Positions 4,501-50,115 of a stretch of 64,000 nucleotides of DNA are shown here, piece after piece. The notes below the pieces were generated by a model, which did not search any database, had not been told where the DNA came from, and saw only the letters and a program-made list of their open reading frames with translations. The DNA is taken from NCBI RefSeq assembly GCF_001194135.2, contig NC_068982.1:5343858-5407857 (forward strand), given 5' to 3'. The first letter of the stretch is position 1. Each line of letters opens with the position of its first letter. The position numbers and the translations under genes are program-made. The stretch comes from Octopus bimaculoides (taxonomy: Eukaryota).

Positions 4501-5174
4501 GAATATTATTCACACACTAGCACGTGTGAATGAAATGTTTTGGAAAAATTCGCACCACAGCTCTTGTTTTGATGAATTCTATCATATGAGGTAGTAAAAA
4601 AAAATAGATTTTTCGGTTTTGAATTTGAATTTAGGTGTTACTTCTTTTTGCAGAACATTTGGCGCCAGTAGTTTTTTATTTAAAATTGTTTCTTGATATC
4701 ATTGGCATCAGATTCCTCTAGTGGAGATCTATCTGAAAAGTTGAATTGAAATATAGTTTTCTTTTGAAGTAAGAATAATATTTGGAGTCAAATTTCAATT
4801 TCAGGTGCTAATCTCCTTTTTTCTTCCACCAGGTTTTACCGCAGTATTTCTTTTCTACTGAATATTTTTGCAAAAAAGTAACATGGATAGATTCCTCATG
4901 CCGAGATCTATCATATAAGCTAAAATAAAATATGTGACTCCAAATCTCTTTCAGGTGTGACTCTCTCGATTTTGATCTCACATATTTTATCGAAACTTAT
5001 TTTCTACCGAAGCAACTTTTACATTTTGGTGCTGAAGATGTAGCTTTGGATATGACTGATCTAAAAATGTAAACATCATCTAATTTCAGTTGTATATTTA
5101 AGAGATGAGGAATTATGTACCATATTTACATTATTTACATTTGACGGATATTTGTCCTCATCTTGTCTGTTGTT

Positions 5175-5220
5175 AACACGACGTTTCGACTGTTATTCCC
5201 TCCAGCCTTCATCAGGTGTC
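5175..5220 (-). ncRNA. Minimal type I hammerhead ribozyme motif with intact core
   Basis: GACAC-CTGATGA-A-GGCTG(loop)CAGTC-GAAAC-GTC-GTGTT. Stem I GACAC/GTGTT, stem II 5 bp, loopless palindromic stem III ACGT, GUC triplet. Predicted cleavage between 5180 and 5179. Confidence 0.75.
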
Positions 5221-5290
5221 TTGGGGAAATTTCAAACCTGTGTTCTCATTCTTAAGGTATTTTTCGATATTATTATTATTATTACGCCAC

Positions 5291-5361
5291 GGGCATATGG
5301 CGTAGTGGTTAAGAGCGTGGGCTACTAACCCCAAGATTACAAGTTCGATTCCAGGCAGTGA

Positions 5362-5365
<4 letters not shown>
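5291..5365 (+). promoter_or_regulatory. tRNA-derived Pol III head (A and B boxes) of the hammerhead element
   Basis: A box TGGCGTAGTGG, then TTAAGAGCG, an anticodon-arm-like segment and B box GTTCGATTC at tRNA-like spacing. Confidence 0.75.
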
Positions 5366-5399
<34 letters not shown>

Positions 5400-6224
5400 T
5401 CGAAAAATACCTGAGGAATGAGAACCCAGGTTCGAAATTTCCCCAAGACATCTGATGAAGGCTGGAGAGTATATCAGCCGAAACGTGTAAACAACAAACA
5501 AAATGAGAACAAATATCCGTCAAATGTAAATAATATCATGTAATTTTGTTAAAGACTGGGTTAGTGATAAAGCCTAGAATTGGTTGTGAATGAGTAAATT
5601 TTGACCTTGAGAATTTTTTGTTCACACATGGTAGTGTGTGAATGATATATATGCATTTATGCATATGTACTCACAGAGATTAGTTATGGGTTCATTAGAA
5701 CTTTTACACATCAACATGTAGTATGCCAGAACTGGCTAGGTATTATAACATAGGGTTCACAGTGAAATAAAACAACCATGAGATATCATGTGTTAGTAGG
5801 ATACTGCATGTATGTAACTGCCAAATCCAATTTAAACTAGATCTGATTTAAGGTTGGTTGCAGGTGCAGCATAGGTTTAAGAAGTAGAACATAAGAACAT
5901 AAATGGGATTGAAAATTTACTACAACTGTTTTGAGAGAACTTTACTGGTGAATTAATAGATTACATCATAAGATAAACCCAGCATCCTACGATAGAATTT
6001 TAAACAGGTATAAATTGGTGAGGTAGAACCTTGATCATGACATGTCCAACGACATATTGGATAAGTGATATTTTAGAAAAGAGCATTTGAATCTCTAAAG
6101 AAATGAGAAGTGTAATGGGTAGGCAACAAGCAAAGAGGTCAAACACCTCTAGTATTTTGAAACAGTTACCTTAATTAGTTTATAGTAGCCAACATATGTG
6201 ATATGTATGTGTGTGTGTTGAGAG

Positions 6225-6480
6225 AGAGAAGGCGAGGCATATATATTGCAAGATCATGGGTTCGATTCCTAGACTGGGTGTTGTGTTGTGTTCTTGAGCA
6301 TAGCACTTCATTTCACATTGCTCTGTGATCATTTTGACATCTGACGTGTGGCACACAGTTGCACCTGTACAGGTAATGTCGATTTGATGGAGAGGAGTGA
6401 GATTATGTCTACACAAACATTTCATCACATCTGTGTGGTTGATCGATAAGAAATTGTCGAACCCTCATACATCATCTAAT
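6225..6480 (+). mobile_element. tRNA-derived SINE, degenerate
   Basis: B box GGGTTCGATTCC followed by GTTGTGTTCTTGAGCATAGCACTTCATTTCAC, similar to 9660-9990. Confidence 0.5.
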
Positions 6481-6559
6481 GACGGGAGAGTCTGTTATAT
6501 ATTTATACACATACAAACACACAAACACCCACCTATATGTGTGTCTTTGTGCATGTCTT

Positions 6560-6794
6560 TGTTCCCCGTGAAACAGTGTCGGTTTGTTTATGTCCCTGTT
6601 ACCTAGAGATTGATAGAATAAGTATCAGGCTTGAAAAAAAGTATGAGTACTGGAGTTGATTTGCTTGACTAAAGCCTTCAAGGCGGTGCCCCAGCATGGT
6701 CGGACTCCAGAGACTGAAACAAATAAAAGACAAAATAAATAAAAGTTGAAAATTAAGAAATATGCATATGCAGTCAGATATGCATACATATATA

Positions 6795-6834
<40 letters not shown>

Positions 6835-7030
6835 TACACAGACATAAACATGTATAGACACACACACACACACTCACACAGAGCTTCTTTCAGCTTCCGT
6901 CTACCAAATCCACCCACAAGGCTTTGGTCAGCCTGAGGCTATAGCAGAAGACAATTGCCCGAGGTGCCACACAGTGGGACTGAACCTGAAACCATGTCGT
7001 TGGTAAACAAGCTACTTACCACGGCCATTC
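6560..7030. mobile_element. Fragments of SINE family A (3' half on +, 5' half on -)
   Basis: Matches the family-A copy at 46681-47090. Confidence 0.7.
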
Positions 7031-7069
7031 TGTCTGTCTGTCTCTCTCTCTCTCTTTCTATATATATAT

Positions 7070-7361
7070 NNNNNNNNNNNNNNNNNNNNNNNNNNNNNNN
7101 NNNNNNNNNNNNNNNNNNNNNNNNNNNNNNNNNNNNNNNNNNNNNNNNNNNNNNNNNNNNNNNNNNNNNNNNNNNNNNNNNNNNNNNNNNNNNNNNNNNN
7201 NNNNNNNNNNNNNNNNNNNNNNNNNNNNNNNNNNNNNNNNNNNNNNNNNNNNNNNNNNNNNNNNNNNNNNNNNNNNNNNNNNNNNNNNNNNNNNNNNNNN
7301 NNNNNNNNNNNNNNNNNNNNNNNNNNNNNNNNNNNNNNNNNNNNNNNNNNNNNNNNNNNNN
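7070..7361. other. Assembly gap
   Basis: N run flanked by (TA)n. Confidence 1.
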
Positions 7362-7644
7362 ATATATATATATATATAGGCATTTGTGAAAAGCTAGATA
7401 ACTAAATGTCATGACGTAGGATTTCAATAAATATTTTTTTCATTCTTTCATTATCTGCTGACGTCATCTTAAGTTCAAGTACTAAACTGACTTAAAATAT
7501 TCTATTTCCATTTAATGTTCATTTTTTTATGCATTCAAGTATTATAGATATTATTTCAGTTTACTTTGAATCTAACCTGTTTTGGCTTCCCTTGATAACA
7601 TTGCGTTAATGTAAATTTGCATATATAAATTTTCATCTATAACA

Positions 7645-7993
7645 AGCACAGGAGTTGCTGTGTGGTTAGAAGCTTGTTTACGAACCACATGGTTCCAGGT
7701 TCAGTCACACTGTGTGGCACTTTCGGCAAGTGTCTTCTACTATAGCCTTGGGCTGACCAGAGCCTTGTGAATAGATTTGGCAGACAGAAACTGAAAGAAG
7801 CCTGTTGTGTGTGTNNNNNNNNNNNNNNNNNNNNNNNNNNNNNNNNNNNNNNNNNNNNNNNNNNNNNNNNNNNNNNNNNNNNNNNNNNNNNNNNNNNNNN
7901 NNNNNNNNNNNNNNNNNNNNNNNNNNNNNNNNNNNNNNNNNNNNNNNNNNNNNNNNNNNNNNNNNNNNNNNNNNNNNNNNNNNNNNNNNNNNN

Positions 7994-8025
<32 letters not shown>

Positions 8026-8205
8026 GTATTTGTGTTTGTTTCCCCCACCATCACTTGACAACCAATGTTGGTGTATTTATGTCCCTGTAACTTAGCAGTT
8101 CAGCAAAAGAGACCGATAGAATAAATCCTGGGGTTTATATTTTTTTTAACTAAAGGCGGTGCTCCAGCATGGCTGCAGTCAAATGCCTGAAACAAGTAAA
8201 AGAAT
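7645..8205 (+). mobile_element. SINE family A with a gap in its internal microsatellite (N 7815-7993)
   Basis: Head GGAGTTGCTGTGTGG...GGTTCAGTC, body GACAGAAACTGAAAGAAGCC, tail GAAACAAGTAAAAGAATAAAA. Confidence 0.8.
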
Positions 8206-8738
8206 AAAAACCTTGGTTTGGCTGGTATTTTGCACCATTCTTCTGTATCGAAATATGCCACCAAAATAGCAACGCCTATCTGTAATTAATGGTGTAATCA
8301 TCAATTAAACGTGTGAGATTCTCCATTCTTGTTGCTGTTGTTAAAGACTCTGGATTCTTGTAAGTGATATTTGGATTTACTTATCGTACCTGAGGAATTA
8401 ACATCGGATGTTAATTCTATTTGAATTTATTGCTATCTGATTGTTCGATGTTGTTAACCAAGTTCGCTTAACCACTGAGTGCTTTCGAGATATCTACCTG
8501 GATTTATTAATCCAGCTTACCTCTTGATATCTAGACATATACACACTCACACATACACACACACATATATGATACATACACACACACATATATAATACAT
8601 ACACACACACATATATTGTTGTTGTTGGCACTCCGTCGCTTACGACGTCGAGGGTTCCAGTTGATCCGATCAATGGAACAGCCTGCTTGTGAAATTAACG
8701 TGCAAGTGGCTGAGCACTCCATAGACACGTGTACCTTT

Positions 8739-9653
8739 NNNNNNNNNNNNNNNNNNNNNNNNNNNNNNNNNNNNNNNNNNNNNNNNNNNNNNNNNNNNNN
8801 NNNNNNNNNNNNNNNNNNNNNNNNNNNNNNNNNNNNNNNNNNNNNNNNNNNNNNNNNNNNNNNNNNNNNNNNNNNNNNNNNNNNNNNNNNNNNNNNNNNN
8901 NNNNNNNNNNNNNNNNNNNNNNNNNNNNNNNNNNNNNNNNNNNNNNNNNNNNNNNNNNNNNNNNNNNNNNNNNNNNNNNNNNNNNNNNNNNNNNNNNNNN
9001 NNNNNNNNNNNNNNNNNNNNNNNNNNNNNNNNNNNNNNNNNNNNNNNNNNNNNNNNNNNNNNNNNNNNNNNNNNNNNNNNNNNNNNNNNNNNNNNNNNNN
9101 NNNNNNNNNNNNNNNNNNNNNNNNNNNNNNNNNNNNNNNNNNNNNNNNNNNNNNNNNNNNNNNNNNNNNNNNNNNNNNNNNNNNNNNNNNNNNNNNNNNN
9201 NNNNNNNNNNNNNNNNNNNNNNNNNNNNNNNNNNNNNNNNNNNNNNNNNNNNNNNNNNNNNNNNNNNNNNNNNNNNNNNNNNNNNNNNNNNNNNNNNNNN
9301 NNNNNNNNNNNNNNNNNNNNNNNNNNNNNNNNNNNNNNNNNNNNNNNNNNNNNNNNNNNNNNNNNNNNNNNNNNNNNNNNNNNNNNNNNNNNNNNNNNNN
9401 NNNNNNNNNNNNNNNNNNNNNNNNNNNNNNNNNNNNNNNNNNNNNNNNNNNNNNNNNNNNNNNNNNNNNNNNNNNNNNNNNNNNNNNNNNNNNNNNNNNN
9501 NNNNNNNNNNNNNNNNNNNNNNNNNNNNNNNNNNNNNNNNNNNNNNNNNNNNNNNNNNNNNNNNNNNNNNNNNNNNNNNNNNNNNNNNNNNNNNNNNNNN
9601 NNNNNNNNNNNNNNNNNNNNNNNNNNNNNNNNNNNNNNNNNNNNNNNNNNNNN
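8739..9653. other. Assembly gap
   Basis: N run. Confidence 1.
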
Positions 9654-9659
9654 TATATA

Positions 9660-9990
9660 GTGAAGGCGCATGGCTCAGTGGTTAGAACGTCGAGCTTATG
9701 ATCGTGAGGTTGTGAGTTTGATTCCTGGACTGGGCTGCATGTTGTGTTCTTGAGCAAGACACTTTATTTCACGTTGCTCCAGTTCACTCAGCTGTAGAAA
9801 TGAGTTGCAACATCACTGGTGCCAAGCTGTATTGGCCCCTTTGCCTTTCCCTTGGATAACATCAGTGGTGTGGAAACGGGAGGCCGGTATGCATGGGCGA
9901 CTAATGGTGTTTCACAAACAACCTTGTCCGGACTTGTGCCATGGAGGGTAACGTTCTAGGTGCAATCCCACCGTCAGTAATGTCCGAAGC
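9660..9990 (+). mobile_element. tRNA-derived SINE (family D)
   Basis: A box TGGCTCAGTGG, B-box-like GTTTGATTCC, core GTTGTGTTCTTGAGCAAGACACTTTATTTCACGTTGCTCCAG; a related inverted fragment is at ~48060-48210. Confidence 0.75.
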
Positions 9991-9992
9991 GG

Positions 9993-10294: not shown

Positions 10295-10367
<73 letters not shown>

Positions 10368-10430
10368 ACAGAGATGCAAGAACACTCATACACACACACA
10401 CACGCACACACACACACACACATACATAAC
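9993..10430. repeat. Compound microsatellite (TG/TA/GA/CA)n
   Basis: Direct inspection. Confidence 0.95.
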
Positions 10431-11405: not shown

Positions 11406-12370
11406 ATACTAACTTAATAATGATTTCAAAATTTGACACAAGGCCAGTGATTCTTGGGGAAGGCTAAGTCAATTACATCGACCCCAGTGCATAACTGGTA
11501 CTTATTTAATTGACCCCGAAAGAATGAAAGGCAAAGTCGAGCTTGCAAAGCATCTTGGCCAGTGTGCTAATGGTTCTGTTAGCTCACCATCTTAATAATA
11601 ATAAATGCCTTGATGCAGTACCAGGCAGTGGGTCTCATGACTTCTGATCTTAATTGATTGGAAATGTTATCATGGACATTGTTTTGTCTTGGTATAAAAG
11701 ATNNNNNNNNNNATGACTTCTGATCTTAATTGATTGGAAATGTTATCATGGACATTGTTTTGTCTTGGTATAAAAGATGGGCTACAGCAAATATTCTGCT
11801 CAATACCACAGATTTGCTTGTCAGTTGTTTGACCTTAACCAATTGAGCGTGTCCTTTAGTGGCTGACAATATGTGCATCTCTGATCACCTGCAGAAGTAG
11901 TGGGGGAGCATCATAGCCACGTGTTGAGAGGAATTCTTTGGGGTTTGGATTATTCACCTTTGGAAATATGGGTGTTTTGTTCATCATCTTTAAAACAAAC
12001 CTATTTTCCTATTTTATTTTATTTGAATTTTTAAATATTAGTTTACGTTTTTTGAAGTTACAAGACCCGAAGATTGCCCTCATTCTGAGTGGAACTTATC
12101 TTGATCAATTTATTATAAATTGCCCAGATCTTTTCCATTTTTATGTGGCCACGAAACGCGCGTAGTCTATTATTCACTTCCGTTTTTATAAATTTACTAA
12201 ACTGAATTAAATTTTTAATCTGATATTTTATGGATTTTATGGTTTATAAATTTTCTTTTGGATTTTATAGTTTTTTTAAATCAGTATTTTGAAGGGTATG
12301 TTTTTCTTGATGGTGGCTGACCTCCTTCATTGCTTGAGTTGCACCTTGTGGTTCTTCTCTAAATTATTAA

Positions 12371-23029: not shown

Positions 23030-23560
23030 GTTCGAACATTGGGCCTCACCGAGGCGATGACTTCTGACCGAGACCTTTGGAAATACACTGTGCGCGAGAA
23101 GACCCGGCAAGCGAAGTGAGACCAAAATCTAAGGCCCAGCCAGCCCACTTATGCGTACCTTCCTTCCTTCATTGGACACTAAATTCCACTTGTGAAGACC
23201 TGTTGAGGCAAGTGAAATCGAAATCGAGTTGCCAGCGCCCCCAGACTGGCTCGTGTGCGGGCGACACATGAAATCTTTCGAGCGGGATCGTTGCCAGTGC
23301 CCCTGGACTGGCTCTTGTGCGGGTGGCACATAAAAGACACCATTTCGAGCGTGGCCGTTTTCGTGCGGGTGACACGTAAAAGCACCCACTACACTCTCTG
23401 AGTGGTTGGCATTAGGAAGGGCATCCAGCTGTAGAAACTCTGCCAAATTAGATTGGAGCCTGGTGTTGCCATCCGGTTTCACCAGTCCTCAGTCAAATCG
23501 TCCAACCCATGCTAGCATGGAAGGCGGACGTTAAACGATGATGATGATGATGAAGATGAT
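23030..23560 (+). mobile_element. 5'-truncated RTE LINE (ORF end, 3'UTR and (GAT)n tail)
   Basis: RTLGLTEAMTSDRDLWKYTVREKTRQAK*, then the UTR and CCCATGCTAGCATGGAAGGCGGACGTTAAAC(GAT)n. Confidence 0.9.
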
Positions 23561-33035: not shown

Positions 33036-33039
33036 CACA

Positions 33040-36030: not shown

Positions 36031-36432
36031 CTCTTTTACTCTCTTTTACTTGTTTCAGTCATTTGACTGTAGCCATGCTGGAGCACCACCTTTAGTCAAG
36101 CAAATCGACCCCAGGACTTATTCTTTTGTAAGCCTAGTACTTATTCTATCGGTCTTCTTTTGCCGAACCGCTAAGTTACGGGGACGTAAACACACCAGCA
36201 TCGGTTGTCAAGCAATGTTAGGAGGACAAACACAGATACACACAAACACACACATATATATACAGATACAAGACGGGCTTCTTTCAGTTTCCGTCTACCA
36301 AATCCACTCACGAGGCTTTGGTTGGCCTGAGGCTATAGTAGAAGACACTTGCCTGAGGTGCCACGCAGTGGGACTGAACCCAGAACCATGTGGCTGGTAA
36401 GCAAGCTACTTACCACACAGACACTCTTGCGC
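36031..36432 (-). mobile_element. SINE family A, near full length
   Basis: (AAGAGTAA)n tail through to the tRNA-like head on the minus strand. Confidence 0.85.
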
Positions 36433-36834: not shown

Positions 36835-39000
36835 ATGGTTTCAAATTTTGCCACAAAGGCAGCAATTTGGTGGGGTGGGGTGAGTCAACTACATCAACCC
36901 CAGTACTGAACTGGTACTTATTTTGTTAACTCCAAAAGGATGAAAGACTAAGTCGACCTTGGCAGAAAGACGCATGAAATGCCGCTAGGCATTTTGCCCA
37001 GCAATGCTAACAATCGCACCAGCTCACTGCCTTAATAATAATCTTTAGGCACAAGGCCCGAAATTCGGGGGTAAGGGGCCAGTTGATTAGATCAACCCTG
37101 AAAGGATGAAAGGCAAAGTTGACCTCAGTGGAATTTGAACTCAGAATGTAAAGACAGACGAAATAACGCTAAGCATTTTGCCTGGCATGCTAACGTTTCT
37201 GCCAGCTCGCCGCCTTATAATCATCATCATCGTTGTTTAACGTCCGCTTTCCATGCTTGCATGGGTTGGACGGTTTGACTGAGGTCTGGCAAGCAAGTGG
37301 GCTGCACCAGGCTCAATCTGATCTGGCAAAATCTCTACATCTGGATGTCCTTCCTAACGCTAACCACTCCGAGAGAGTAGTGGGTGTTTTTACATGCCAT
37401 AATAATAATAGTTTCAAATTTTGGCACAAGGCCAGCAATTTCGGTGGAGTTGGGCAGTGGATAACATCAACCCGAATGCTCAACAGGTATTTTTTTAAAG
37501 TAGTTGTATGTTGTCAACTTAATGCGACAGTCCCCTGAAGGGAATAATACTACTGTTGGTTAGACCTAGGAAGCTGCACCGCTTCCTGTCGGCCTTGATA
37601 CATTTTCTGTGGTGTCCTGGGGTGGAGGTGCTTGTCCCCCCCCCCTGTAAACATAAGGACACAGGAAATGTGNNNNNNNNNNAGGTGCTTGTCCCCCCCC
37701 CCTGTAAACATAAGGACACAGGAAATGTGTCATGGCCGACAGGAAGCAGTGCAACTTCCTAGGTCTAACCAACAGTAGTATTATTCCCTTCAGGGGACTG
37801 TCACATTAAGTTGACAGCATACAACTACTTCATCGTATCACTAGAGTATAAATCTCTCTGAGAGATTTAGAAATGTATTATTTCTAAAAAAGGTATTTCT
37901 TTCATTGACGCTGAAAGAATGGAAGGTAATATTAGAACTCAGAACACAGATGAAATGCCACGAAGAATTTTGTCCAGCATACTAACGATTCTGCTAGTTT
38001 GTTTCCTTGATGATAATAATAATAATAATAATGATTTCATTTATTTGCCACAAGGACAAAGGATGAGGGGGACAATACAAAGAGAGACAAAGTGTGGGGA
38101 TTTGCATGTAATGAAATGATAAAATTTTTTTAAAAAATTGTTTTTAATAAGTATTGGTTAAGTATACACTGAAAAAGAAGGGACATGTACATAGTATGCG
38201 ACAGGTGAAAAACAAAAATAATCCTTTCTACTAAAGGCACAAGACCTGAAATTTGTAGGGAGGGGACTAGTCAATTACATCGACCCCAGTATTTCAGTGG
38301 TACTTAATTTATTGACCCCGAAAGGATGAAAGACAAAGTTGACCTTGGTGGGATTTGAACACAGAATGTTGCGGCAGATGAAATGCTGCTAAGCATTTCG
38401 CCAGGTGTGCTAATGATTCTGCCAGCTCGCCACATTCAATAATAATTATAACGTCTTCAAATTTTGCTCCAAAGGCAGCCATTTTGAAGGAGGGGATGTG
38501 TCAAGTCGACCCCAGCGTTCAACTGATACTTATTTTATCGACCCTGAAAGGATGAAAAGCAAAGTCAACTTTAGCGGAATTTGAACTCTGAGCATAGTGG
38601 TAGACAAAATGCCACTAAGCATTTTGCCCAGTGAATAATAATAATAATGATAATCCTTTCTACTCTAGTCACATGGCACGAAAAAATTTTGATGGTGGGG
38701 GCTAGTCAATTACTGACCCGAATGATTGACCTTAAAAGAAAAATTGACCACAGTGGAATTTGAACTCTGGCTGTGAAAAACGGGGAAGAAATAACGCTAA
38801 GCATGTTGTTGACTCTGCTAATTATTCTACTAGCTCATTACCCTACTAACAACAACGACCCTTTCTGCTGTAGGCACAAGGCCTGAAATTCTAGGGGAGG
38901 GGCTAAGTCAATTACATTGACCCCCCAGTGTTCAACTGGTACTTATTTTATCTAACTCAAAGAGATGAATGGCTAAGTCAACCTTGGCAGATGGACAAAA
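36835..39000 (-). mobile_element. Cluster of ~6 SINE family B copies, with an RTE tail (37222-37398) and a MITE inserted
   Basis: Repeated ATCGACCCC...GACCCCGAAAGGATGAAAGGCAAAGTTGACC...GAATTTGAACTCAGAA blocks separated by (AAT)n. Confidence 0.8.
37498..37830. mobile_element. MITE with ~110 bp terminal inverted repeats (contains a 10-N gap at 37673-37682)
   Basis: AAGTAGTTGTATGTTGTCAACTTAATG...GGAAGCTGCACCGCTTCCTGTCGGCC is mirrored at 37735-37830. Confidence 0.8.
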
Positions 39001-39103
39001 TGCTGCTTCTTCCACTTCTATTTCTTTCTCACAAGAACACTGTTTCTGAATTACTTTCTTCAGATCATCTTACAAAGTGTTGATATTGAATATCAACCAA
39101 TTA

Positions 39104-39476
39104 ATTATTTACATTTGATGGATATTTGTCATCTTTGTTGTTAACACGTTTCGGCTGATATACCCTCCAGCCTTCATCAAGTGTCTTGGGGAAATTTCGA
39201 ACCTGGGTTCTCATTCCTAAGGTATTTTTCGATATTATTATTCGAGTCACTGCCTGGAATCAAACTCGGAATCTACTAACTCCAAGATTGAGTTTGATTC
39301 CAGGCAGTGACCTGAATAATAATAATCTTAAGAATCAGAACCCGGGTTTGAAATTTCCTCCAAGACACCTGAAGAAGGCAGGAGGGTCTATCAGCCGAAA
39401 CGTGTTAACAACAAACAAGATGAGGACAAATATCTTTCAAGTGTAAATAATTCCTTATCTCTTAAATATAGAACTG
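39104..39476. mobile_element. Palindromic tRNA-head/hammerhead element, copy 2
   Basis: Two tRNA 3' halves head-to-head in the centre. Both arms carry the 3-nt-deleted hammerhead form. Flanks TATCAACCAATTA (39091-39103) and TATTGACTAATTA (39477-39489), 10/13 with transitions only. Confidence 0.8.
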
Positions 39477-41171
39477 TATTGACTAATTAATGTCAGACGA
39501 CCTGCAAAGGTCACAGGCACTGACTGACCCTTCCATTTGACTAAAAAACAACAAAAATGATTCTGAGCTGTTCATTCACTTCTGAAAGACCCCCTCATTT
39601 CACTGACTTCAACAGAAATAAAATTTTCCTCTAGGTAATTTACTAACAGTTTTCACATCACAGAGTCTTTTTTAAACATAATGGTACCAAGACAATAATG
39701 CCACAACATAAAATACTTAAGATCCCAATAGAATGCCAAATAGAATCTGCCAACCTTTAATCGTCTTGTTATGTTTTAAGTCTGTGAAAATTTGTTTTTG
39801 TGATACCAATACGCAAGAGATATTCACAGCCAAAGCTTTGAAGTAGAATCGAATAGCCTTGCTTAGAATCACCGATAAAATCATAAAATTGACAATCCAT
39901 AAAAAAAAATCTGCTATATGAGCTTTTGAGAAAATAATAATAATAATACTGAGAAAACGATTTGGTTTCTAGCTAAATCTCAGCAAACTTTCTCACCATC
40001 CACCCTGAGAGCTGGAATAATCATTAGAAAATCTTTTAGCAAATAGTTTTGTGTGATATCTCTGGGTATCAAAGGAGCTTTTGGTGAATTCTGGTACATT
40101 TGGACTTATTTCAGCTTAAGTATCAGTGAAGTATACGAAGAAATGGTTGCCCAGCAACAGAGTTACCTTAATAGAACTATTATGATTGATCTCACAAGTC
40201 ATTGTTCTGATGTGGTGTTACTTAGTCGTGATTGAGCAGAATTAGAATCAGCATTCCAGCTATGACCATCCCATCTTTTATTCAGACATAGTGTATCAAA
40301 GGTCATGTAATCTAATATCTCCCTCTTTTAAGGTGGTAAGGTGTAATTTGAGTAACATTTGGCTGCTATTTCTAGCACTTAGAGTGAGTGAATCAGAATC
40401 TCCATCACTGATTAGAGTCTGACTTATCTATCACAGAGCTCAATATTTGATCCACTTCTGCTGATTGCTTACAGATATAATTTTACTAAAATAATCCAGG
40501 AGTATTCTGTTGTGTCTGCGGGGAGAGTCATTCTCTTTTGGTGCCTTAGAATTTAACACACTCACAGGTAAAATTTCCACTTCTTTCTTTTTTTTAAATT
40601 TTTCTAAAATTTTCGTTGTGTCTTGCAACCTTTTCACTAGTTATGACCATCCGTTACTCACACTGAATTCCTTTTTGTTTCTGCGCATGTGTGTGGATCA
40701 GTGTGTGTGTGTGCCTATACATGCATGTATTTATATATGCATGTGTGTGTATGTATGTATGTATGTATTCTGCATATTCATGTGTTTGTATGTATGGATG
40801 TGCATCTCCATATGTGTAGACACGTGTCTCCATATGTGTCCTTGTGTGAAGTAAAGTGTGTATATATATGGTCATGTGTTTCAGTCTTCATTTGCGTATG
40901 TGTGCTTGTCTGTTCATATAACCTATGTCCCTATCCATCTGTATGTTGATCTGTTTACTTTCATATCCATATGCTTACATACATACATCTATCTACATAT
41001 ATATACACTCATACATACATACTAATCTGGATTAAAATCTGTAACAAAAACAGCAGAGTCGTTGGCATGCATTCAGACCATTGTCATTCTCTTCTGACCC
41101 ACATTTAATCAAGTCGGGTATCAGTTTTAACAATCTAACAAACAAGGGTAAATTGTAAAGGTCACAAATAA

Positions 41172-41610: not shown

Positions 41611-43243
41611 TGGCTTTTCTTATATATCATCATCATCAACATTGGTTGAATGCCTTGATAGGTAATGGCAAGGCCAGAGGCCATACCAGGTTCCATAGTC
41701 TGGAAGCTCTTCCTAACATCAACCACTTTATAGAGTGTAGGGGATATGTTTGACATGGCCCTGGCACCATGGTTTTAGGATCTCAAGTCTGTTGTGGTGG
41801 ACAGGTCTTTTTGAGTACCACAATGTGTCATATATCTCATTTTTTCTGTCATCTACGTAAGATTCAATGTTTTGAGATCAGCCTTTGGGTTTCCTTCTTC
41901 CACAACTGTCTCCACTTTAGATATATATATATAAATTTAAATAATAAGGGTAAAAATTGATATTAATTAGATTAATATCAATTTAAACCAGTGGCCTAGC
42001 ATATTGAAAAAAATCTGAAGATTCAGAAAATTATATTACATGCATATAAGAGGAATGACCACTAAGAAAAATTGTTCTCAAGAAAATTCAGCAAACACCA
42101 GAACATAAAGCAAGCAAGACAAATGAAAAGATCAAAATATAGTGATACACACACACACACACATGCCTCCCTTCCAGCTGAAGGGGTTTTAGTCTTACGG
42201 GTTATTCAGTGACCCTGTTGATGCTGGTGCCACATAAAAAGCACCCAGTGTACTCTGTGAAGTTGTTGGCATTAAGAAGGGTATCCAGCCATAGAAAGCA
42301 AGCTAAGGCACATGAGTGGAACCTGGTCCAACTGCCCAGCATGAAGAACTGATATCAAACAATGATGATGAATTATATATAAGAGCATGCTCATGGTTGA
42401 GTGCTTGTGCAAGCACTCAACTATGATTTCTGATCTCAAAAACAACTATAAGCTAAAAAAGTTCACCGCATAATTTCTTATTTCCTTGTCATTTATAGAA
42501 TCTCTTATTACCAGTGGGCAACTCAACTGATGCTTTGTTCTGAAGCAGATGTATATTAAGTTTTAACACCAAGTTATCACTATGCCTGAACAAAAAGTGT
42601 GTGTGTGTGTGTGTGTTCCTCGGTTTTTATGAAAAGAATGTCTTTTACACAACAGAACGGAAAGGAACATTTAAGAAAATACTTTGAAAGATGACCAAAA
42701 AGGAAAACAGTTCAGATAATTTTCCTGCTATCAAACTTCCATCTATGTTTGAGGTATGTGCTGAAATGGAAAGACGAGCAAGATCTCACATTATCGCAAA
42801 TCCATGATGCCAACTGGGGCTGTGTAAAAAGTATTACTATCACAGGCTGCCATTATCTGTTGCCTATAAATCTGAAGTGGGGGAATTTGTGTATGTTTTA
42901 AATAATTCAACTGTGTTTATGAGTGCTCCAGGGGAAAAGCATGAATATCACAGCTTCCCCATTATCCATTGCCTATACTTCAGGGGGGAGAAGGAGTTGT
43001 GTGAGAGGGCATCATCATCACCATCTAGCATTCTTTTTTCCATGCTGGTATAGGTTTGATAGTTTGACAAACTCTCACACACATTTTTACTTTCAGTTTC
43101 TGTCTACCTACATCCATTTACAAGGCTTTGACTGGCTCAATGCTCTAGTAGAAGACAACTTGCTTTAGGTGCCACAAAATGGAACTGAACCAAAGACCAC
43201 ATAATTAGGAAGTAAGCTTCTTAACTAAACAGCTACACCTAAA

Positions 43244-43684
43244 TATAGTTCTATATTTAAGAGATGAGGAATTTACATTTGATGGATATTTGTCCTCATC
43301 TTATTTGTTGTTAACACGCTTCGGCTGATATACCCTCCAGCCTTCATCAGGTGTCTTGGGGAAATTTCGAACCTGGGTTCTCATTCCTAATGTATTTTTC
43401 AATGATTATTATTATTATTATTCAGGTCACTGCCTGGAACAAACTCGGAATCTTGGGGTTAGTATCCCATGCTCTTAACCACTATGTCATATGCCCATGG
43501 GCATATGGTGTAGTGGATAATAATATAGTAATAATAACATCGTAAAATACCTTAGGAATGAGAACCCAGGTTTGAAACTTCCCCAAGACACCTGATGAAG
43601 GCTGGAGGGTATATCAACCGAAACGTTGTGTTAACAACAAACAAGATGAGGTCAAATATCCATCAAATGTAAATAATATACAAG
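43244..43684. mobile_element. Palindromic tRNA-head/hammerhead element, copy 3
   Basis: Perfect 13 bp TSD AGCTACACCTAAA at 43231-43243 and 43685-43697. Full tRNA head on - (43423-43496) with a partial inverted head next to it. Confidence 0.9.
43587..43632 (+). ncRNA. Minimal hammerhead motif, GUU triplet, one stem II mismatch
   Basis: GACAC-CTGATGA-A-GGCTG(loop)CAACC-GAAAC-GTT-GTGTT. Confidence 0.6.
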
Positions 43685-44129
43685 AGCTACACCTAAACAC
43701 CTGAATGTGTGAAAACACATTTTTCACAATTTATCTTGTAGTCTCCACTCCACCTATTTTACTAACTTCATCTATAAACATTTTATCTTGAAAAAATGCT
43801 TCTCATAATTTATAATCAAGTGTCAGGTTTTATATGAAAGAGGAAGTACAACTGAATTCCAATTATATATATATTTATTAAATTTATAAACTTCAATTCT
43901 GAATTTGTTTAGTCTTGGTCAGCTGGCAGAGTTGTTAGCATGCCAGGCAAATGTCTTTACATTCTGGGTTCAAATTCTGCTAAGGTCAACTCTGCTTTTT
44001 ATCCTTTCAAGGTCGATTAAAATAAGTACCGGTTAAATACTGGAGTGAATGTAATCAACTTACCTTCTCTTCCAAAATTGCTGGCCTTGTGCTAAAAGTT
44101 AAAATCAATACTTACTAAATAATTTATTT

Positions 44130-44620: not shown

Positions 44621-44934
44621 GGGTATGGCACAGTAAATAAATACAAATTTAGAGTGGGATCCAGGATTTATCTGTTTTGAAGTCACCTAAAGACAGAACC
44701 TTGCAACCATTAAAGAAATGGTTCTGCTCAATATGCAGAAAAGGAAACTGCTGTCAAACCATCCAATCCATGGAAAATAGGAGTTAAATGGTGATGATGA
44801 TGATGATGATGATATATTTATGAGCTGACGACTGGTAAAAGTTCATTTGATAAAAAGCAAACGTGAGGCATATCAATGAAAGATAAATATACATTCATTT
44901 ATGTATGATGCCAATTGTTATGATAATTATCTTT

Positions 44935-45245
44935 TTGTTTCATTCATTGGAGTGTGACCATGCTGGAGCATTGGCTTAAAGTGTTTAGTTGAACAAACTG
45001 ACTCCTGTACTTTTGCTAAGTTGTGGGAGACATAAACAAACCAGCACCGGTTGTCAAGCAGTGATGGGGGACAAATGCAGACACACACACACACGTGATG
45101 GACTTCTACAGTTTCCATCTATCAAATTCACTCACAAAAAGTACAGGACCATAGAAGATCCTTGCCCAATGTGTCACACGATGGAACTGAACCCAAGACC
45201 TGGTAGTTGGAAAGCAATCTTCTTAACCACATTGCCATGCCTGTA
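44935..45245 (-). mobile_element. SINE family A
   Basis: Pattern match to 46681-47090. Confidence 0.7.
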
Positions 45246-45479
45246 CCTTGTAATCACAACGTTTAGAGATGAGAAATGCAACCCAAGAAGACAACATAAG
45301 GGGAGGAAACATATTTTGGAAATTGGAACTAAGATAAATATACAAAATTAATTAGCAAACAGACATCACTGGTAACTTCGTCATATTCAGTCACTGTAAT
45401 TAAAAGTGCTAATAACAAATTGATTTTTTCTACATTAAAAGAAAACAAAATCTGTAATGGTTTTTGATTGAGGCATGAG

Positions 45480-46440
45480 AGCAATAATTTTAAGGGAAGC
45501 AGGATTAGTCAAAGCCATTGACCCTAGTATGTGACTGGTGCTTTATGTTATCAACCCTTGAGGGTTTGAAGCCAGAATGTAAAGTGTTGGAGCAAATACA
45601 GCATGGCATTTGGTCCAACATTCTAATGATTCTGGTGGCAAAAGCTAGCAGAATGGTCAACATGCCAGGTGAAATGCTTAGCGGTATTTCATCTGTCTTT
45701 ACGTTCTGAGTTCAAATTCCACCAAGGTCGACTTTGCCTTTCATCCTTTTGAGGTTGATAAATTAAGTACCAGTTGTGTACTGGGGTCGATCGAATCGAC
45801 TGGCCCCCTCGCCAAAACTTTCAGGCCTTGTGCCTAGAGTAGAAAAGATTCTAATGATTCTGCTAAATAATAATAATCCTGAAATTTGCAGGGAGGTGGT
45901 AAGTTGATTACATCAACCCCAGTGCATAACTGGTACTTATTTATTCGATCCTGAAAGGCAAAGTCGACCTCAGCAGATCAGAATGTAGTGGCAGACAAAA
46001 TACCACTAAGCATTTCATCCGGCATACTAACGATTCTGCGAGCTTGCTGCCTTATTAATATTAATAATGGTTTCAAATTTGGCACAAGGCCAGAAAATTT
46101 GGGGCAGTGGGCAAGTCAGTTACAATGATCCCAGTGATTGACTGCTACTTATTTTATCAACCCCAAAAAGATAAAAGGCAGGCAGGATTTGAACCCAGAA
46201 CATAAAGATGCATGAAAGGCAATCAACCATTCTGACTGGCATGCTAATGGTTCTTTCAGCTCACAACCCAAATAATAATAATAATCCTTTCTGCTAAGGA
46301 CACAAGGCCTGAAATTTGTGGGGAGGGGGCTAGTTGATTACATCGACCCCAGTGTTTCACTGCTACTTAATTTATTGGCCCTGAAAGGGTGAAAGGCAAA
46401 GTTGACTTTGGCAAAATTTGGATGATAGTAATAATAATAA
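45480..46440. mobile_element. Cluster of ~5 SINE family B copies
   Basis: One + copy at 45640-45850 and three head-to-tail - copies at 45870-46430. Confidence 0.8.
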
Positions 46441-46448
46441 TAACTTAC

Positions 46449-46532
46449 GTTTGATACTGTATATGCACCAGGATTCATAAAGCTGGTGAGATCAATGTGC
46501 ATTTTCCGTTCATTTGAAGAAATATTGATTTT
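46449..46532 (-). CDS. CLCN7: CLC-7-like exon (CBS linker/CBS2 start)
   Basis: cattaccag|KINISSNERKMHIDLTSFMNPGAYTVSN|gtaagt. Confidence 0.95.
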
Positions 46533-46680
46533 CTGGTAATGAGAATAAAATGGCTAATTAAATAATCATTCCTCATATTTTAATATTCTTGTTTTCATAC
46601 ATCTCCACTGAGATGCCCTTCTTGGATACTGATTCAACTTTAAAAAAGAAAAATGCAAGAAAAAAAAAAAAAGTAGAAAA

Positions 46681-46843
46681 GGCGCAGGAGTGGCTGTGTG
46701 GTAAGTAGCTTGCTTACCAACCACATGGTCCCGGGGTTCAGTCCCGCTGCGTGGCACCTTGGGCAAGTGTCTTCTACTATAGCTTCGGGCTGACCAAAGC
46801 CTTGTGAGTGGATTTGGTAGACGGAAACTGGAAGAAGCCCGTC

Positions 46844-46875
<32 letters not shown>

Positions 46876-47090
46876 GTGCGTGTGTGTGTATTTGTTTGTC
46901 TCCCCCAGCATCGCTTGACAACCGATGCTGGTGTGTTTACGTCCCTGTAACTTAGCGGTTCGGCAATAGAGACCGATAGAATAAGTACTAGGCTTGCAAA
47001 GAATAAGCTCGGGTCAATTTGCTCGACTATAAAGGCGGTGCTCCAGCATGGCCACAGTCAAATGACTGAAACAAGTAAAAGAGTAAAGAG
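46681..47090 (+). mobile_element. tRNA-derived SINE family A, best-preserved copy
   Basis: A box TGGCTGTGTGG, B-box-like GGTTCAGTCCC, internal (TA)n(TG)n, tail GAAACAAGTAAAAGAGTAAAGAG. Confidence 0.88.
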
Positions 47091-47212
47091 TATCTATAGG
47101 GCTTGGCTCTTTGTTGGTTACGACAACGAGTGTTCCAGTTGAACCAATCAACAGAACAGCCAGCTCATGAAATTAAATAAGCTAGGCTCTCCACAGACGT
47201 ACATACCATTAA

Positions 47213-48023
47213 CCCATTCATTACCAACCTGTCCGCAGTCAGCTGAAACATTTTTGGACTCAAATGACCAACTCAGCCGAAGCCGGCCAAGTGAACCCAT
47301 TGATATTTAAATATAAATTTCAGCACAAATCTCGTTAGTACATTTGTGAAAACACTTGATTTCACTTAGTAAATAGTCAAGTTACAGTATCTGATGTTGT
47401 TTGATGTAATATCTGAGCTGTGCGAATTTTGGGCAATTTTTTTCCACATTTTTTCTTTGGCAATTTTTTTCATCTTTTAAAATGGATACCAGTTTCATGC
47501 TATCAAGCAGTGATTCTGGATTTGAGGACTTTACAATGGAAGATATGGAGAAATCAAGCAAATATAAGCTTGTTTGATCACTGCAGAAAGTAAACAAACC
47601 GAGAAAAAAGAAAGCTTGTGGTTTACATGTATTTACCTGTAATTAGAGTCACTTTGAGACAAACGTTATGCAATAGAATTGATTAAGAACCTTTTCTTCA
47701 ATTAAATAAAATAGTTACAGTTGCTTAACCCTTTTGTTACCAACCAGCTCTGGCTCTGAGTACAAATGTCTATAAGTTTTGAATTAAAATCTTCCACCAA
47801 ACCTTAGTCACAATTTATGTTCCTAACACTAGCTGAATGATAACTAAGTTATTTTACTAAGTTCTTTGTTATATTTAAAGTAATTGAAAGAAACACAGAA
47901 CATCTCAACAGAAAATACAATAACAAAAGGGTTAATGAAACCAGTCTAAATTCCTGATGGTTTTAGAATTTAACTGAAACTCATGAGGGGTTTGTTTTAC
48001 TTAGAAATATAGTAACGAAAGGG
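47213..48023 (+). mobile_element. Internally deleted piggyBac-like element (outer)
   Basis: TTAA|CCCATTCATTAC ... GTAACGAAAGGG|TTAA; short acidic remnant MDTSFMLSSSDSGFEDFTMED at ~47483. Confidence 0.6.
47729..47931. mobile_element. piggyBac-type MITE (inner, nested)
   Basis: TTAA|CCCTTTTGTTAC ... TAACAAAAGGG|TTAA. Confidence 0.85.
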
Positions 48024-49203
48024 TTAATGTAGTTCTCAGGGAGATTCAGTATGACACAGAATGTGACAAAGTTGGGCCCTTCTGAATTACAGGTACAACT
48101 CATTTTTGCCAGCTGAGTGGATTGGAGCAACGTGGAATAAAGTGTCTTGCTGAAAGACAAACGTGCCACTGGGAACTGAATTCAGGATCTCACGATCATC
48201 AGCTGAATAACTTATAAGCCAGCCTCCTTCATAATACCACAAGGCATTTTCTCCAATGCTCTACTGATTCTACCAATCTACTGCAGCAGAAGTGTGGGTT
48301 TCAAATTCTGATACAAGGCCTGAAATTTCAGAGTAAGGACTAAGCCGATTACATCAACCTCAGTGCATGACTGGTACTTATTTTATTGACCCTGAAAGGA
48401 TGAAAGGCAAAGTCATCTTCAGTGGCATTTGAACTCAGAATGGAAACACGGATGAAATGCCGCCAAGCATTTTGTCCAGCACGGTAATGATTCTGCCAGC
48501 TTGTTGCCTTACTGTAGGATAATTATTAATTAGTTCATTAAATATCCCATAAATAATAATGCTCATTATTAATGATGTGCAACTATGCAAAATACTATGA
48601 AACATTAGTTCTGAAATTCTTTGATATTGGCTCCACAGAAATCAGTGAAAGTATGACAGCAATAAGGTCTTTCTGGTGCCAAACTGTCTTAAATTTTGAT
48701 TTGTTACATACAAAGACTGGCCTTTTTCTGAGCCCAAAACCAATATTAAAGAAAATATGAGACTGTAAGACACAGACTGGTTCAGAAGTTGGTAAAATTA
48801 AAGAAATAAAATAAGTTACACCTAATTAATTATTTTTTCAAATTAAAAATTACTATTTCTGTTAGACATAGGAAGGGTTTAGAAGGATTGGTAAACTCCT
48901 TTTCAAGGAACATTCAGTTTTTAAACTGAACTCAGCTTTCATTGATACTCGCTGTCCACCCAAAGTTGTACGTCTTGCACATAGGGAGAATGAATTGGTA
49001 AAGTACAAACATGAATGACCCTATGGTCATGTGTTTGGACCTTGTCACCTTACACTTGCGTCACAGCACTAGCCAAGGTACGTTACTCTGCACACCCCAG
49101 TTTGCCAGATTAACAAGCTTCTTCAATTAATAAACCAATATGAAACGAGAACAGGTAAGACTAACAACTGACTATGAAAACAATTAGATACTCTAACCAA
49201 ATA

Positions 49204-49413
49204 CAGGAATCCCTTGCCATTTCACGGTTCACCTATTGCGGTTTATTAGTCAAGCTTACATCAATCCCTCCGTGGTGGTGTTGTGCATTTATAATAAAAG
49301 AAATATATACAAATTATAAAAATATACAGTACAGTAGCGTTTCTACTTTGTGGATTTTCACCTATCGCAGGGGGTTTGGGAACGTGACACCTGTGATAGT
49401 CGAGGGATTACTG
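49204..49413. mobile_element. pogo/Tigger-like MITE
   Basis: TA|CAGGAATCCCTTG ... CGAGGGATTACTG|TA. Confidence 0.75.
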
Positions 49414-49495
49414 TATAGCACTTTGAGAACTAGAATAAACTAAAATCAACACCGATTCCTGGGAAATAAAGCTGAATAAAAGAATAAAAACTTAC

Positions 49496-49588
49496 ATGAA
49501 TTGGCTGGAAGCGAGGATATTCTTCTCTAAAGTCTTTATTATGAAGATTCCTGATTGTGTGGAAGAGGTCCTCTCTCTCATTGAAAGC
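49496..49588 (-). CDS. CLCN7: CLC-7-like exon (inter-CBS region)
   Basis: cacttgctag|AFNEREDLFHTIRNLHNKDFREEYPRFQPIH|gtaagt. Confidence 0.95.
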
Positions 49589-49690
49589 CTAGCAAGTGAA
49601 AAACAGAAAAAGGACAGAGTATGGCTATGAGTGAAATCTATATTGTTTTTATAGAATTCAGATTGAGGATGCAAACCAGTTTATATATTA

Positions 49691-50115
49691 CAGTTCTATC
49701 TTTAAGAGATGAGGAATTATTTACATTATTTAGATTTGACGGATATTTGTCCTCATCTTTGTTGTTAACACAATGTTTCGGCTGATATACCCTCCAGCCT
49801 TCATCAGGTGTCTTGGGGGAATTTCGAATCTGGGTTCTCATTCCTAAGGTATTTTTCGATGTTATTATTATTATTATTATTATTCAGGTCACTACCTGGA
49901 ATCGAACTCGGAATCTTGGGGTTAGTAGTCCGCGCTCTTAACCACTATGCTATATGCCCGTGGGCATAATAATAATAACATCGAAAAATACCTTAAGAAT
50001 GAGAACCCAGGTTCGAAATTTCCCCAAGACACCTGATGAAGACTGGAGGATATATCAGCCGAAACGTGTTAACAACAAACAAGATGAGGACAAATATCTG
50101 TCAAATGTAAATAAT
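49691..50115. mobile_element. Palindromic tRNA-head/hammerhead element, copy 4
   Basis: Full tRNA head on - (49885-49959). Flanks CAGTTTATATAT (49677-49688) and CAGTCTATAGAT (50117-50128), 10/12. Lies ~100 nt upstream of a CLC acceptor site. Confidence 0.85.
49767..49812 (-). ncRNA. Minimal hammerhead motif, long form with a G-to-A change in stem III
   Basis: GACAC-CTGATGA-A-GGCTG(loop)CAGCC-GAAAC-ATT-GTGTT. Confidence 0.5.

Follow-up and report, generated by a model that had tools for sequence, protein, structure and literature searches.

Palindromic repeats with a tRNA-like head and Penelope-like insertion features in the Octopus bimaculoides genome

Four palindromic copies in a repeat-rich window

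A 64,000-nt stretch of the Octopus bimaculoides genome (NCBI RefSeq assembly GCF_001194135.2, contig NC_068982.1, positions 5,343,858 to 5,407,857 of the forward strand), here called the window, contains four copies of a short palindromic element. Its repeated unit consists of a tRNA-like head that bears A and B boxes, followed by an (AAT)n linker and an arm of ∼136 nt, and each copy is an inverted pair of such units placed head to head. The window is AT-rich (∼37% G+C) and full of repeats resembling short interspersed nuclear elements (SINEs). When the four copies were compared by blastn with the window, to which all copy counts refer, they were found at 5087-5534, 39104-39476, 43244-43684, and 49691-50115, the same four places given in a preliminary description of this DNA, and nowhere else. 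No solo arms or fragments were detected in the window by this search; its other matches were ATT/AAT microsatellites only.

The copies are ∼370 to 450 bp long (copy 1, 448 bp) and, once oriented with the tail at the left, can be aligned over their whole length. In this orientation they read as a 25- to 27-nt tail, a reverse-complemented arm of ∼136 nt, (ATT)n, head material, (AAT)n, and a forward arm ending TAAATAAT. This is the previously described order of arm, (TAT)n, head or heads, (AAT)n, and inverted arm, with extra terminal sequence on one arm, and it was seen in all four copies. The tail, CAGTTCTATATTTAAGAGATGAGGAAT, is present at a single end of every copy: at the left in copies 1, 3, and 4 and at the right in copy 2, which lies in the opposite orientation in the window. 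Both termini of each copy are 3′ ends of the repeated unit, one at TAAATAAT and the other 25 to 27 nt further on. The parts of the four copies are as follows.

5087..5268, minus strand: copy 1, tail-bearing arm (sense runs from 5268 down to 5087), with tail at 5087-5111 and a loop duplication
5175..5220, minus strand: copy 1, the only intact minimal hammerhead, GACAC-CUGAUGA-A-GGCUG..CAGUC-GAA-ACGU-C^GUGUU, and the single full descriptor match in the window
5269..5290: copy 1, centre, (ATT)5 then ACGCCAC, in which ACGCC is the reverse complement of GGCGT 10 nt into the head
5291..5365, plus strand: copy 1, complete tRNA-like head, with A box TGGCGTAGTGG at 5298 and B box AGTTCGATTCC ending at 5352
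5366..5398, plus strand: copy 1, (AAT)n linker
5399..5534, plus strand: copy 1, tailless arm ending TAAATAAT, with hammerhead region 5443-5495 lacking the cleavage-site triplet
39104..39233, minus strand: copy 2, tailless arm, with hammerhead region 39137-39189 (U in place of C3, no triplet)
39243..39314: copy 2, centre, two 5′-truncated heads facing each other (minus-strand head 39243-39273, plus-strand head 39274-39314)
39327..39476, plus strand: copy 2, tail-bearing arm lacking its first ∼13 nt, with hammerhead region 39360-39412 and tail 39452-39476
43244..43403, minus strand: copy 3, tail-bearing arm, with tail 43246-43270 and hammerhead region 43307-43359 (GAAGC in place of GAAAC, no triplet)
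43422..43516: copy 3, centre, a complete minus-strand head, AT, and an 18-nt inverted head start (43499-43516, plus strand)
43539..43677, plus strand: copy 3, tailless arm, with hammerhead region 43583-43638 (ACGU-U^GUGUU kept, one helix II mismatch)
49691..49860, minus strand: copy 4, tail-bearing arm, with tail 49691-49715 and hammerhead region 49761-49816 (ACAU-U^GUGUU, triplet present, CpG decayed)
49885..49967: copy 4, centre, a complete minus-strand head (49885-49959) with intact A and B boxes, GT, and the 6-nt inverted start GGGCAT
49980..50115, plus strand: copy 4, tailless arm, with hammerhead region 50024-50076 lacking the triplet

Runs of N occur in the window at 7070-7361, 7815-7993, 8739-9653, 11703-11712, 37673-37682, and 51743-51752. 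Since none lies within 1 kb of any copy, each copy and its flanking duplication stand in contiguous sequence, and the estimated gap lengths affect only the distances between copies. An assembly artefact was ruled out by this distance from gaps, by the differing flanks and centres of the four loci, and by the empty site of copy 1 in its paralogs described below.

Insertion of the palindromes and their centres

Each palindrome is bracketed by a duplication of 12 to 13 bp. Recounting gave the same match numbers as the preliminary description, and each duplication is unlikely by chance when judged against 20,000 random site pairs drawn from the same window at spacings of 370 to 450 bp and allowed equal positional slack (P values of ∼0.001, ∼0.018, ∼0.0003, and ∼0.007 for copies 1 to 4, respectively).

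5075..5086: copy 1, left duplication ATCATCTAATTT, 11/12 with 5535-5546; present once in uninterrupted paralogs
5535..5546: copy 1, right duplication ATCATGTAATTT
39091..39103: copy 2, left duplication TATCAACCAATTA, 10/13 with 39477-39489
39477..39489: copy 2, right duplication TATTGACTAATTA
43231..43243: copy 3, left duplication AGCTACACCTAAA, 13/13 with 43685-43697
43685..43697: copy 3, right duplication AGCTACACCTAAA
49677..49688: copy 4, left duplication CAGTTTATATAT, followed by TA, 10/12 with 50117-50128
50117..50128: copy 4, right duplication CAGTCTATAGAT

Two junctions carry additional bases. In copy 3 the arm ends at 43677 and seven extra bases, ATACAAG (43678-43684), precede the duplication; in copy 4 one extra base separates the arm end from the duplication.

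For copy 1 an unoccupied version of the target could be identified. The flanks of this copy, once joined, align across the junction with paralogs at 4284-4536, 443-687, and 1075-1263. These uninterrupted paralogs read ...GTAAACATCATCTAATTTGGTTAAA... with a single ATCATCTAATTT, and copy 1 has that 12-mer on both sides. Because three paralogous empty sites carry the target once, they directly show that the whole 448-bp palindromic unit was inserted with a 12-bp duplication. The earlier proposal that the palindrome inserted as one unit is thereby borne out.

The surroundings of three copies were noted in addition. The repeat that hosts copy 1 is at least 250 bp long and occurs at least five times in the first 5.7 kb (window positions 440-5700) at 70 to 80% identity (443-687, 1075-1263, 3230-3460 inverted, 4284-4536, and the copy 1 flanks), and blocks of other repeats (families D14 and D17) are interleaved with it. 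On its left, copy 3 is flanked (43094-43243) by the 3′ part of another dispersed repeat, which matches 36285-36412, 7650-7793, 46686-46830, and other sites at ∼73 to 75%; since this repeat stops at about the insertion site, the insertion of copy 3 took place at, or right beside, an older element's end. The target of copy 4 (CAGTTTATATATTA on the left, 49677-49706, and CAGTCTATAGATATTT on the right, 50117-50135) is similar to the end of the element's tail, CAGTTCTATCTTTAAG, a likeness that could reflect microhomology between primer strand and RNA at the outer start site or could be chance.

The eight arms were aligned in sense orientation, from the head towards the end. Pairwise identity is 85 to 95%, and the two arms of one copy (87 to 95% identical) are no closer to each other than arms from different copies. 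Divergence from the consensus is 2 to 6% and similar within a copy, the rearranged copy 2 arm reaching 10.5%. No position discriminates tailed from tailless arms, nearly all differences being private; the sole difference between the two kinds is the stop point, at TAAATAAT in one and after continuation through TCCTCATCTCTTAAATATAGAACTG in the other. A 3-nt indel distinguishes the two arms of the same copy in three of the four copies; copies 1 and 4 have it on the tailed arm and copy 3 on the tailless one.

The centre differs in each copy and the arms do not. Copies 1, 3, and 4 contain one full head and 5 to 18 nt of an inverted head start, the full head lying on the tailless half in copy 1 and on the tailed half in copies 3 and 4. 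Copy 2 contains two truncated heads, which begin near head nt 33 in one case and near nt 45 in the other. The centre of copy 3 forms a 20-nt palindrome, CATATGCCCATGGGCATATG, with (AAT)n following the second head start. From the indel difference within copies, the asymmetric centres, and the exact common end of the tailless arm, we conclude from sequence comparison that the inverted pair was probably made anew at each insertion and not copied from an inherited palindromic master.

Such a master, moved by an enzyme of the Penelope-like element (PLE) type, would give rise to each copy through read-through RNA over both arms or through self-primed (snap-back) cDNA, with the centres eroding later. 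The palindromic centres (20 nt in copy 3) and the like overall layout of all four copies would fit this, long palindromes are in general deletion-prone, and Arkhipova et al. inferred self-priming from palindromes at inverted PLE junctions. We nevertheless regard it as unlikely. The arms of one copy differ by the indel in three of four cases; the deletions are off-centre, leaving one head complete and the other at 5 to 18 nt; snap-back synthesis should overrun the tail, yet the second arm ends at TAAATAAT in every copy; and outward transcription by RNA polymerase III (Pol III) from central heads would not cover both arms.

In three copies, the truncated half stops at the (AAT)n that links head to arm. 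Trinucleotide tracts of this kind were suggested by Arkhipova et al. to be places of template jumps, and we speculate that (AAT)n marks the original fusion of head and arm as well as a favoured place for the reverse transcriptase (RT) to stall or jump. The possibility that the head is a separate SINE lodged in a pre-existing palindrome was rejected in view of the two inverted partial heads in copy 2 and the inverted head starts in copies 1, 3, and 4.

Long inverted arms, a short noncoding unit, and flanking duplications are also what a foldback transposon or miniature inverted-repeat transposable element (MITE) would display, in either case a transposase-driven DNA transposon whose terminal inverted repeats would be ∼165 bp long. 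Known cut-and-paste superfamilies make fixed duplications of 2 to 11 bp. The duplication here, at 12 to 13 bp with 1 to 7 extra bases at two junctions, is longer and looser than this. Neither a fixed duplication nor inverted repeats extending to both termini were found: the termini read CAGTTCTATATTT and ATTATTTACATTT, and the repeat starts 25 to 27 nt inside one end. Together with centres that vary among copies while the arms do not, these properties make transposase-driven movement highly improbable.

Hammerhead, stem-loop, and head of the repeated unit

The minimal hammerhead ribozyme defined for PLEs by Cervera and de la Pena has no helix III, carries an extra base between 9 and 10.1, and combines a conserved G10.1-C11.1 pair and a long helix II with a helix I of 4 to 5 bp and a palindromic 15.2-16.2 segment (PMC4209133). 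It is thought to act as a dimer, and in schistosome DNA minimal hammerheads have been noted on opposite strands, 100 to 700 bp apart (PMC4209133). In the octopus family, CUGAUGA, a 6-bp helix II (GGCUGG/UCAGCC), and GAAAC occur in all eight arms apart from point changes. The triplet after GAAAC, which holds positions 16.2 and 16.1 and the cleavage-site nucleotide, is kept in three arms: as GTC in the tailed arm of copy 1, GTT in the tailless arm of copy 3, and ATT in the tailed arm of copy 4, the latter two being CpG-decay products of GTC. The triplet, and with it the cleavage site, is missing from the other five arms, which therefore cannot be cleaved.

With the triplet in place, the RNA reads GACAC-CUGAUGA-A-GGCUGG...UCAGCC-GAA-ACGU-C^GUGUU and agrees with all listed points of the minimal hammerhead: helix III is absent, an unpaired base stands between 9 and 10.1, and G10.1-C11.1, the palindromic 15.2-16.2 segment, and a 5-bp helix I are present. 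We wrote a descriptor from the published minimal-hammerhead rules and applied it to the window and to first-order Markov simulations of it. One of the eight arms passed in full (5175-5220), and 0.003 matches were expected per simulated window. Across the eight arms, 93.6% of cells in the hammerhead helices pair. The ancestral arm reads as a putative complete minimal hammerhead of the Penelope type, and the motif in its present state appears to be a relic of a PLE-derived module. This upholds the earlier suggestion of a Penelope-type hammerhead in the arms, all defining features being found in the ancestral sequence and at 5175-5220; as for the CUGANGA and GAAAC cores that had been named, they are present in all eight arms bar point changes, but the complete motif survives in one arm only. 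The copies decay neutrally. As the cleavage-site triplet was gone from most source RNAs, the family would be able to spread without self-cleavage.

Downstream of the hammerhead, the first nine bases of the tail, UCCUCAUCU, pair with AGAUGAGGA inside the arm to form a 9-bp stem, which RNAalifold predicts for each of the four tailed arms, a G-C pair being changed to G-U once. The loop measures 25 to 43 nt. Since the second strand of the stem is the start of the tail, the 3′ edge of the loop is precisely where tailless arms stop. Copies 1 and 4 have a duplication of GTAAATAAT in the loop of the tailed arm. There, just inside the tail, an extra GTAAATA(AT) unit (5112-5129 in copy 1, 49716-49724 in copy 4) duplicates the sequence at the end of the tailless arms and could be a trace of stuttering by the RT at its inner start site.

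The tRNA-like head spans ∼75 nt and is complete in copy 1 (5291-5365, plus strand), copy 3 (minus strand, first base 43496), and copy 4 (49885-49959, minus strand). Its A box, TGGCGTAGTGG, occupies head nt 8 to 18 and matches the consensus TRGCNNAGTGG; its B box, AGTTCGATTCC, occupies nt 52 to 62 and matches the consensus GGTTCGANNCC with one mismatch. A and B boxes at tRNA-gene spacing were found in copies 1 and 4 and in an unrelated repeat at 9671-9725, and the combined pattern did not occur in 300 simulated windows. Inspection by eye reveals GCGT/GCGC as a D arm, CUACUAA as an anticodon-type loop with a stem of 3 bp, and TTCGATT as a T loop; the acceptor stem is gone. Judging from these traits and from the lack of a tRNA call by ARAGORN or Rfam, "tRNA-derived Pol III promoter" would be a fair description of the head and "tRNA" would not. 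On the sense strand, from the head to the end of the element, a run of four or more T residues is absent from all eight halves, and the antisense strand always has T5, a weak but consistent sign that Pol III would transcribe outward from the head.

The repeat at 9671-9725 (plus strand) contains a second, unrelated tRNA-like head, TGGCTCAGTGG...GAGTTTGATTCC, directly after a 915-N gap, and presumably belongs to another SINE family.

A head with A and B boxes invites comparison with an ordinary tRNA-derived SINE mobilised by a long interspersed nuclear element (LINE), whose dimers would have arisen by twin priming or from a dimeric master and in which CUGAUGA and GAAAC would be coincidental. Such an origin would agree with the many SINE-like families in the window, with its LINE-type RT fragment, and with the duplications of 12 to 13 bp, which fit target-primed reverse transcription by a LINE. 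Measured against the SINE2 class, the internal Pol III promoter is present, but a LINE-derived, A-rich, or simple-repeat 3′ end is not: the arms stop at fixed, nonrepetitive sites 25 nt apart (TAAATAAT or ...AGAACTG), and (AAT)n is internal. Twin priming, moreover, is established to invert an internal 5′ segment and does not yield two complete 3′ ends, a full minimal-hammerhead match is expected only 0.003 times per window, and a one-sided tail has been described as specific to PLEs. We consider LINE mobilisation of an ordinary SINE to be quite improbable.

Comparison with Penelope-like and other retroelements

Published PLE insertions provide a closer match. They are 5′ truncated and often have an adjacent, inverted, 5′-truncated copy placed head to head, giving flanking inverted repeats, and a tail of 30 to 40 bp often extends just one of the ends (PMC8557442). 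The PLE insert of Adineta vaga is completed by an inverted pseudo-long terminal repeat (pLTR); head-to-head junctions are recognisable by their palindromes, and pLTRs are by themselves enough for moving foreign DNA in trans (PMC3846280). The purified Anolis PLE protein cleaves and extends both DNA strands; its RT starts at two adjacent internal RNA sites, the interval between which is the tail, in a stem-loop downstream of the hammerhead, and hammerhead cleavage is not needed (PMC11167929).

In the octopus sequence, each insertion is seen to be an inverted pair with a variable centre, a one-sided tail, and a 12- to 13-bp duplication around the unit. The following features looked for in a PLE insertion were found: an inverted 5′-truncated pair, a tail at one end (slightly short), a short duplication, and a minimal hammerhead. 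Two outward 3′ ends 25 nt apart, a stem-loop at that place, and a hammerhead 50 nt upstream likewise fit the PLE picture, as do AT-rich targets, a duplication around the whole insert, and a variable palindromic joint. Because inverted repeats, one-sided tail, short duplication, and minimal hammerhead together match the published PLE signature, we favour the reading that the family is a Pol III-headed, non-autonomous retroposon mobilised by a PLE enzyme, and consider it reasonably probable.

The following course of events would account for the copies. The mobile unit would be half a palindrome, comprising the ∼75-nt head, the (AAT)n linker, and a ∼160-nt body made up of the minimal hammerhead, an AC-rich stretch, and the 9-bp stem AGAUGAGGA/UCCUCAUCU with its 25- to 43-nt loop. 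Pol III would start at the head, at or a few nucleotides upstream of GGGCATATGG, and read outward through the arm. A trans-acting Penelope-like enzyme with RT and GIY-YIG activities would then nick both strands of an AT-rich target 12 to 13 bp apart, and each 3′-OH would prime reverse transcription at one of two fixed internal RNA sites, one after ...UAAAUAAU at the 3′ edge of the loop and the other 25 nt further on, after ...AGAACUG. The two cDNAs would converge and be joined by their heads, the joint showing 5′ truncation, microhomology, or a short snap-back.

Several observations weigh against PLE mobilisation or against parts of it. The tail (25 to 27 nt) is shorter than the published 30 to 40, and the duplication (12 to 13 bp) is longer than the 8 to 10 bp of rotifer examples. 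A tailed end is paired with a tailless one in every copy, whereas independent choice of start sites predicts some pairs of two inner or two outer ends, although chance would give four of four with P ∼ 0.06. The family is known here from four copies, a small sample. The 3-nt indel sits in a CGTCGT repeat and could be a recurrent slip, which weakens the argument that two templates were used. The predicted stability of the arm RNA is not unusual (z = −0.8). No compensatory change was found in the hammerhead helices of the eight arms, five of six substitutions breaking a pair; since helix mutations lack compensation, the case for the motif depends on its agreement with the published architecture and not on covariation. 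The search with hammerhead models that the preliminary description had proposed gave no support, as RF00163 and its relatives in Rfam had no match at the gathering threshold in the whole window, a silence explained by the minimal type lacking helix III. At E ≤ 10, Rfam, run on copies 1, 3, and 4, returned only chance-level matches, with no hammerhead and no tRNA among them. ARAGORN likewise detected no tRNA in the window, nor in the isolated heads at relaxed thresholds (down to the 70% setting). The tRNA head of the preliminary description thus retains its A and B boxes at tRNA spacing but is recognised as a tRNA by neither ARAGORN nor Rfam.

The window was also searched for a partner enzyme. 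It contains no RT-like open reading frame (ORF) of at least 110 amino acids. A Pfam scan of its 102 stop-free stretches of at least 75 amino acids matched only RVT_1 (3-446, minus strand) and Voltage_CLC, and no GIY-YIG domain was found among these stretches, a further point against PLE mobilisation. The RVT_1 match is a fragment cut by the window edge (E = 3e-15; ...GVHQGSVLSPLLF...LLYADDLAL...). Its best solved-structure matches are R2-type non-LTR RTs and not telomerase, which also speaks against a PLE source and by which the fragment is assigned to a LINE rather than a PLE. The window being without a PLE, the partnership is deduced from architecture only, and this too counts against it. 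Exact 22- and 24-mers of the arm had no matches in metagenome, viral, and prokaryote genome contigs, and a protein search with the longest stop-free stretch of the element (66 amino acids, antisense, running through arm, microsatellite, and head) gave no match.

Compared with endonuclease-positive PLE insertions (Pen2a_Av of Adineta vaga and Poseidon PAc of Anolis), the octopus family shares head-to-head repeats, a 3′ extension of one repeat, a short duplication of the whole unit, a junction palindrome, and AT-rich targets, as well as a minimal hammerhead after which come an AC-rich stretch and, near the region of RT start, a stem-loop. The likeness considered here is one of architecture. The family differs from PLEs in having no RT/GIY-YIG ORF and no direct pLTR pair, and its inner end is a tRNA-like Pol III head where that of a PLE is a pLTR bearing a Pol II promoter. 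Among non-autonomous PLEs, MRC1 (Chlamys group, Chlamydomonas) resembles it in its short noncoding form and keeps the PLE 3′ end and insertion architecture. MRC1-like elements differ in having pLTRs and head-to-tail multicopy inserts and in lacking both a tRNA-derived head and a hammerhead.

The preliminary description had classed the family as a hybrid of SINE and retrozyme and had known of no described element with its layout. The SINE half of that label agrees with the Pol III A/B head, joined here to a PLE-like insertion architecture; the retrozyme half does not hold. Metazoan non-LTR retrozymes, recently argued to be non-autonomous PLE derivatives, do share non-autonomy, a hammerhead, AT richness, presumed PLE dependence, and duplications longer than 4 bp, but they consist of tandem direct repeats with classical type I hammerheads and release circular RNA. 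Here, tandem type I hammerhead repeats were not found: the motifs lie on opposite strands, there is no tandem array, five of eight arms are without the cleavage site, and the head is a Pol III one. With opposite-strand hammerheads, no tandem array, and five arms lacking the triplet, excision of the unit and circular RNA are not expected. The claim of no precedent was too strong, given that the schistosome SINE-like elements Sm-alpha and Sj-alpha combine a Pol III promoter with a hammerhead in a short noncoding unit and that non-autonomous PLEs are known. Sm-alpha and Sj-alpha, by description, carry canonical active type I hammerheads in largely tandem direct repeats, in contrast to the minimal, mostly defective hammerhead and the dispersed inverted pairs with a one-sided tail seen in octopus.

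A tRNA-derived A/B head on a short retrotransposon parasite is otherwise shared with LINE-dependent SINEs and with the LTR-dependent TRIMp3 elements (Cassandra, Helenus, and Ajax), from which the octopus family differs in a 3′ module and insertion scars of the PLE rather than the LINE or LTR type. A 2024 paper on non-autonomous elements with Pol III promoters covers SINEs and TRIMp3 and does not mention PLEs (PMC10886601). We found no tRNA-headed element of the PLE type in the open-access literature, where absence is not proof. We advance only tentatively, as a possibility we hold less firmly than PLE mobilisation itself, that the family is the first recognised SINE-type parasite of PLEs, in which a tRNA-derived head is fused through (AAT)n to a PLE RT-recognition module of hammerhead, stem-loop, and tail.

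If this is true, LINE-dependent SINEs and LTR-dependent TRIMp3 would be joined by a third class of non-autonomous retroelement with a Pol III head, and the SINE concept, a Pol III head combined with a borrowed 3′ module, would reach a third class of enzyme. Its copies would be an in vivo record of reverse transcription on two strands from two start sites, so far seen only in vitro, and loss of the cleavage site would be tolerated, even favoured, once Pol III transcribes the element. PLE integration is the least understood retrotransposon mechanism, its inverted repeats and tail having been explained only recently, in vitro, and for one lizard element. Short, abundant noncoding passengers are informative in this respect, as they offer many simple and complete accounts of individual insertions, and each copy would record both RT start sites, the nick spacing, and the cDNA joint, and a genome-wide census of the family would test the PLE integration model in vivo. 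The spread of most arms after loss of the cleavage site would also be natural evidence on the role of the PLE hammerhead in mobility. Elements of this kind are likely to be misannotated as MITEs or repeats of unknown type.

The remaining observations concern the surroundings of the family. A stop-free stretch at 59875-60123 (minus strand), chosen by eye, carries the chloride-channel signature ...GLLIPSGLFIPCFLIGGAWGRLVG..., and Voltage_CLC was matched by one of the 102 stretches in the Pfam scan (E = 1e-10). From this signature, the window may be part of a CLC channel gene whose noncoding parts would then contain the four elements. The 10-N gap at 51743-51752 is located inside a SINE-like repeat, and further, older SINE-like copies are scattered across the window (families D6, D11, D12, D15, and D16). 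A SINE-like repeat of ∼200 bp is present in three copies with 96% identity (1282-1482, 23360-23560 in inverted orientation, and 51412-51603), which are much younger than the palindromic family.

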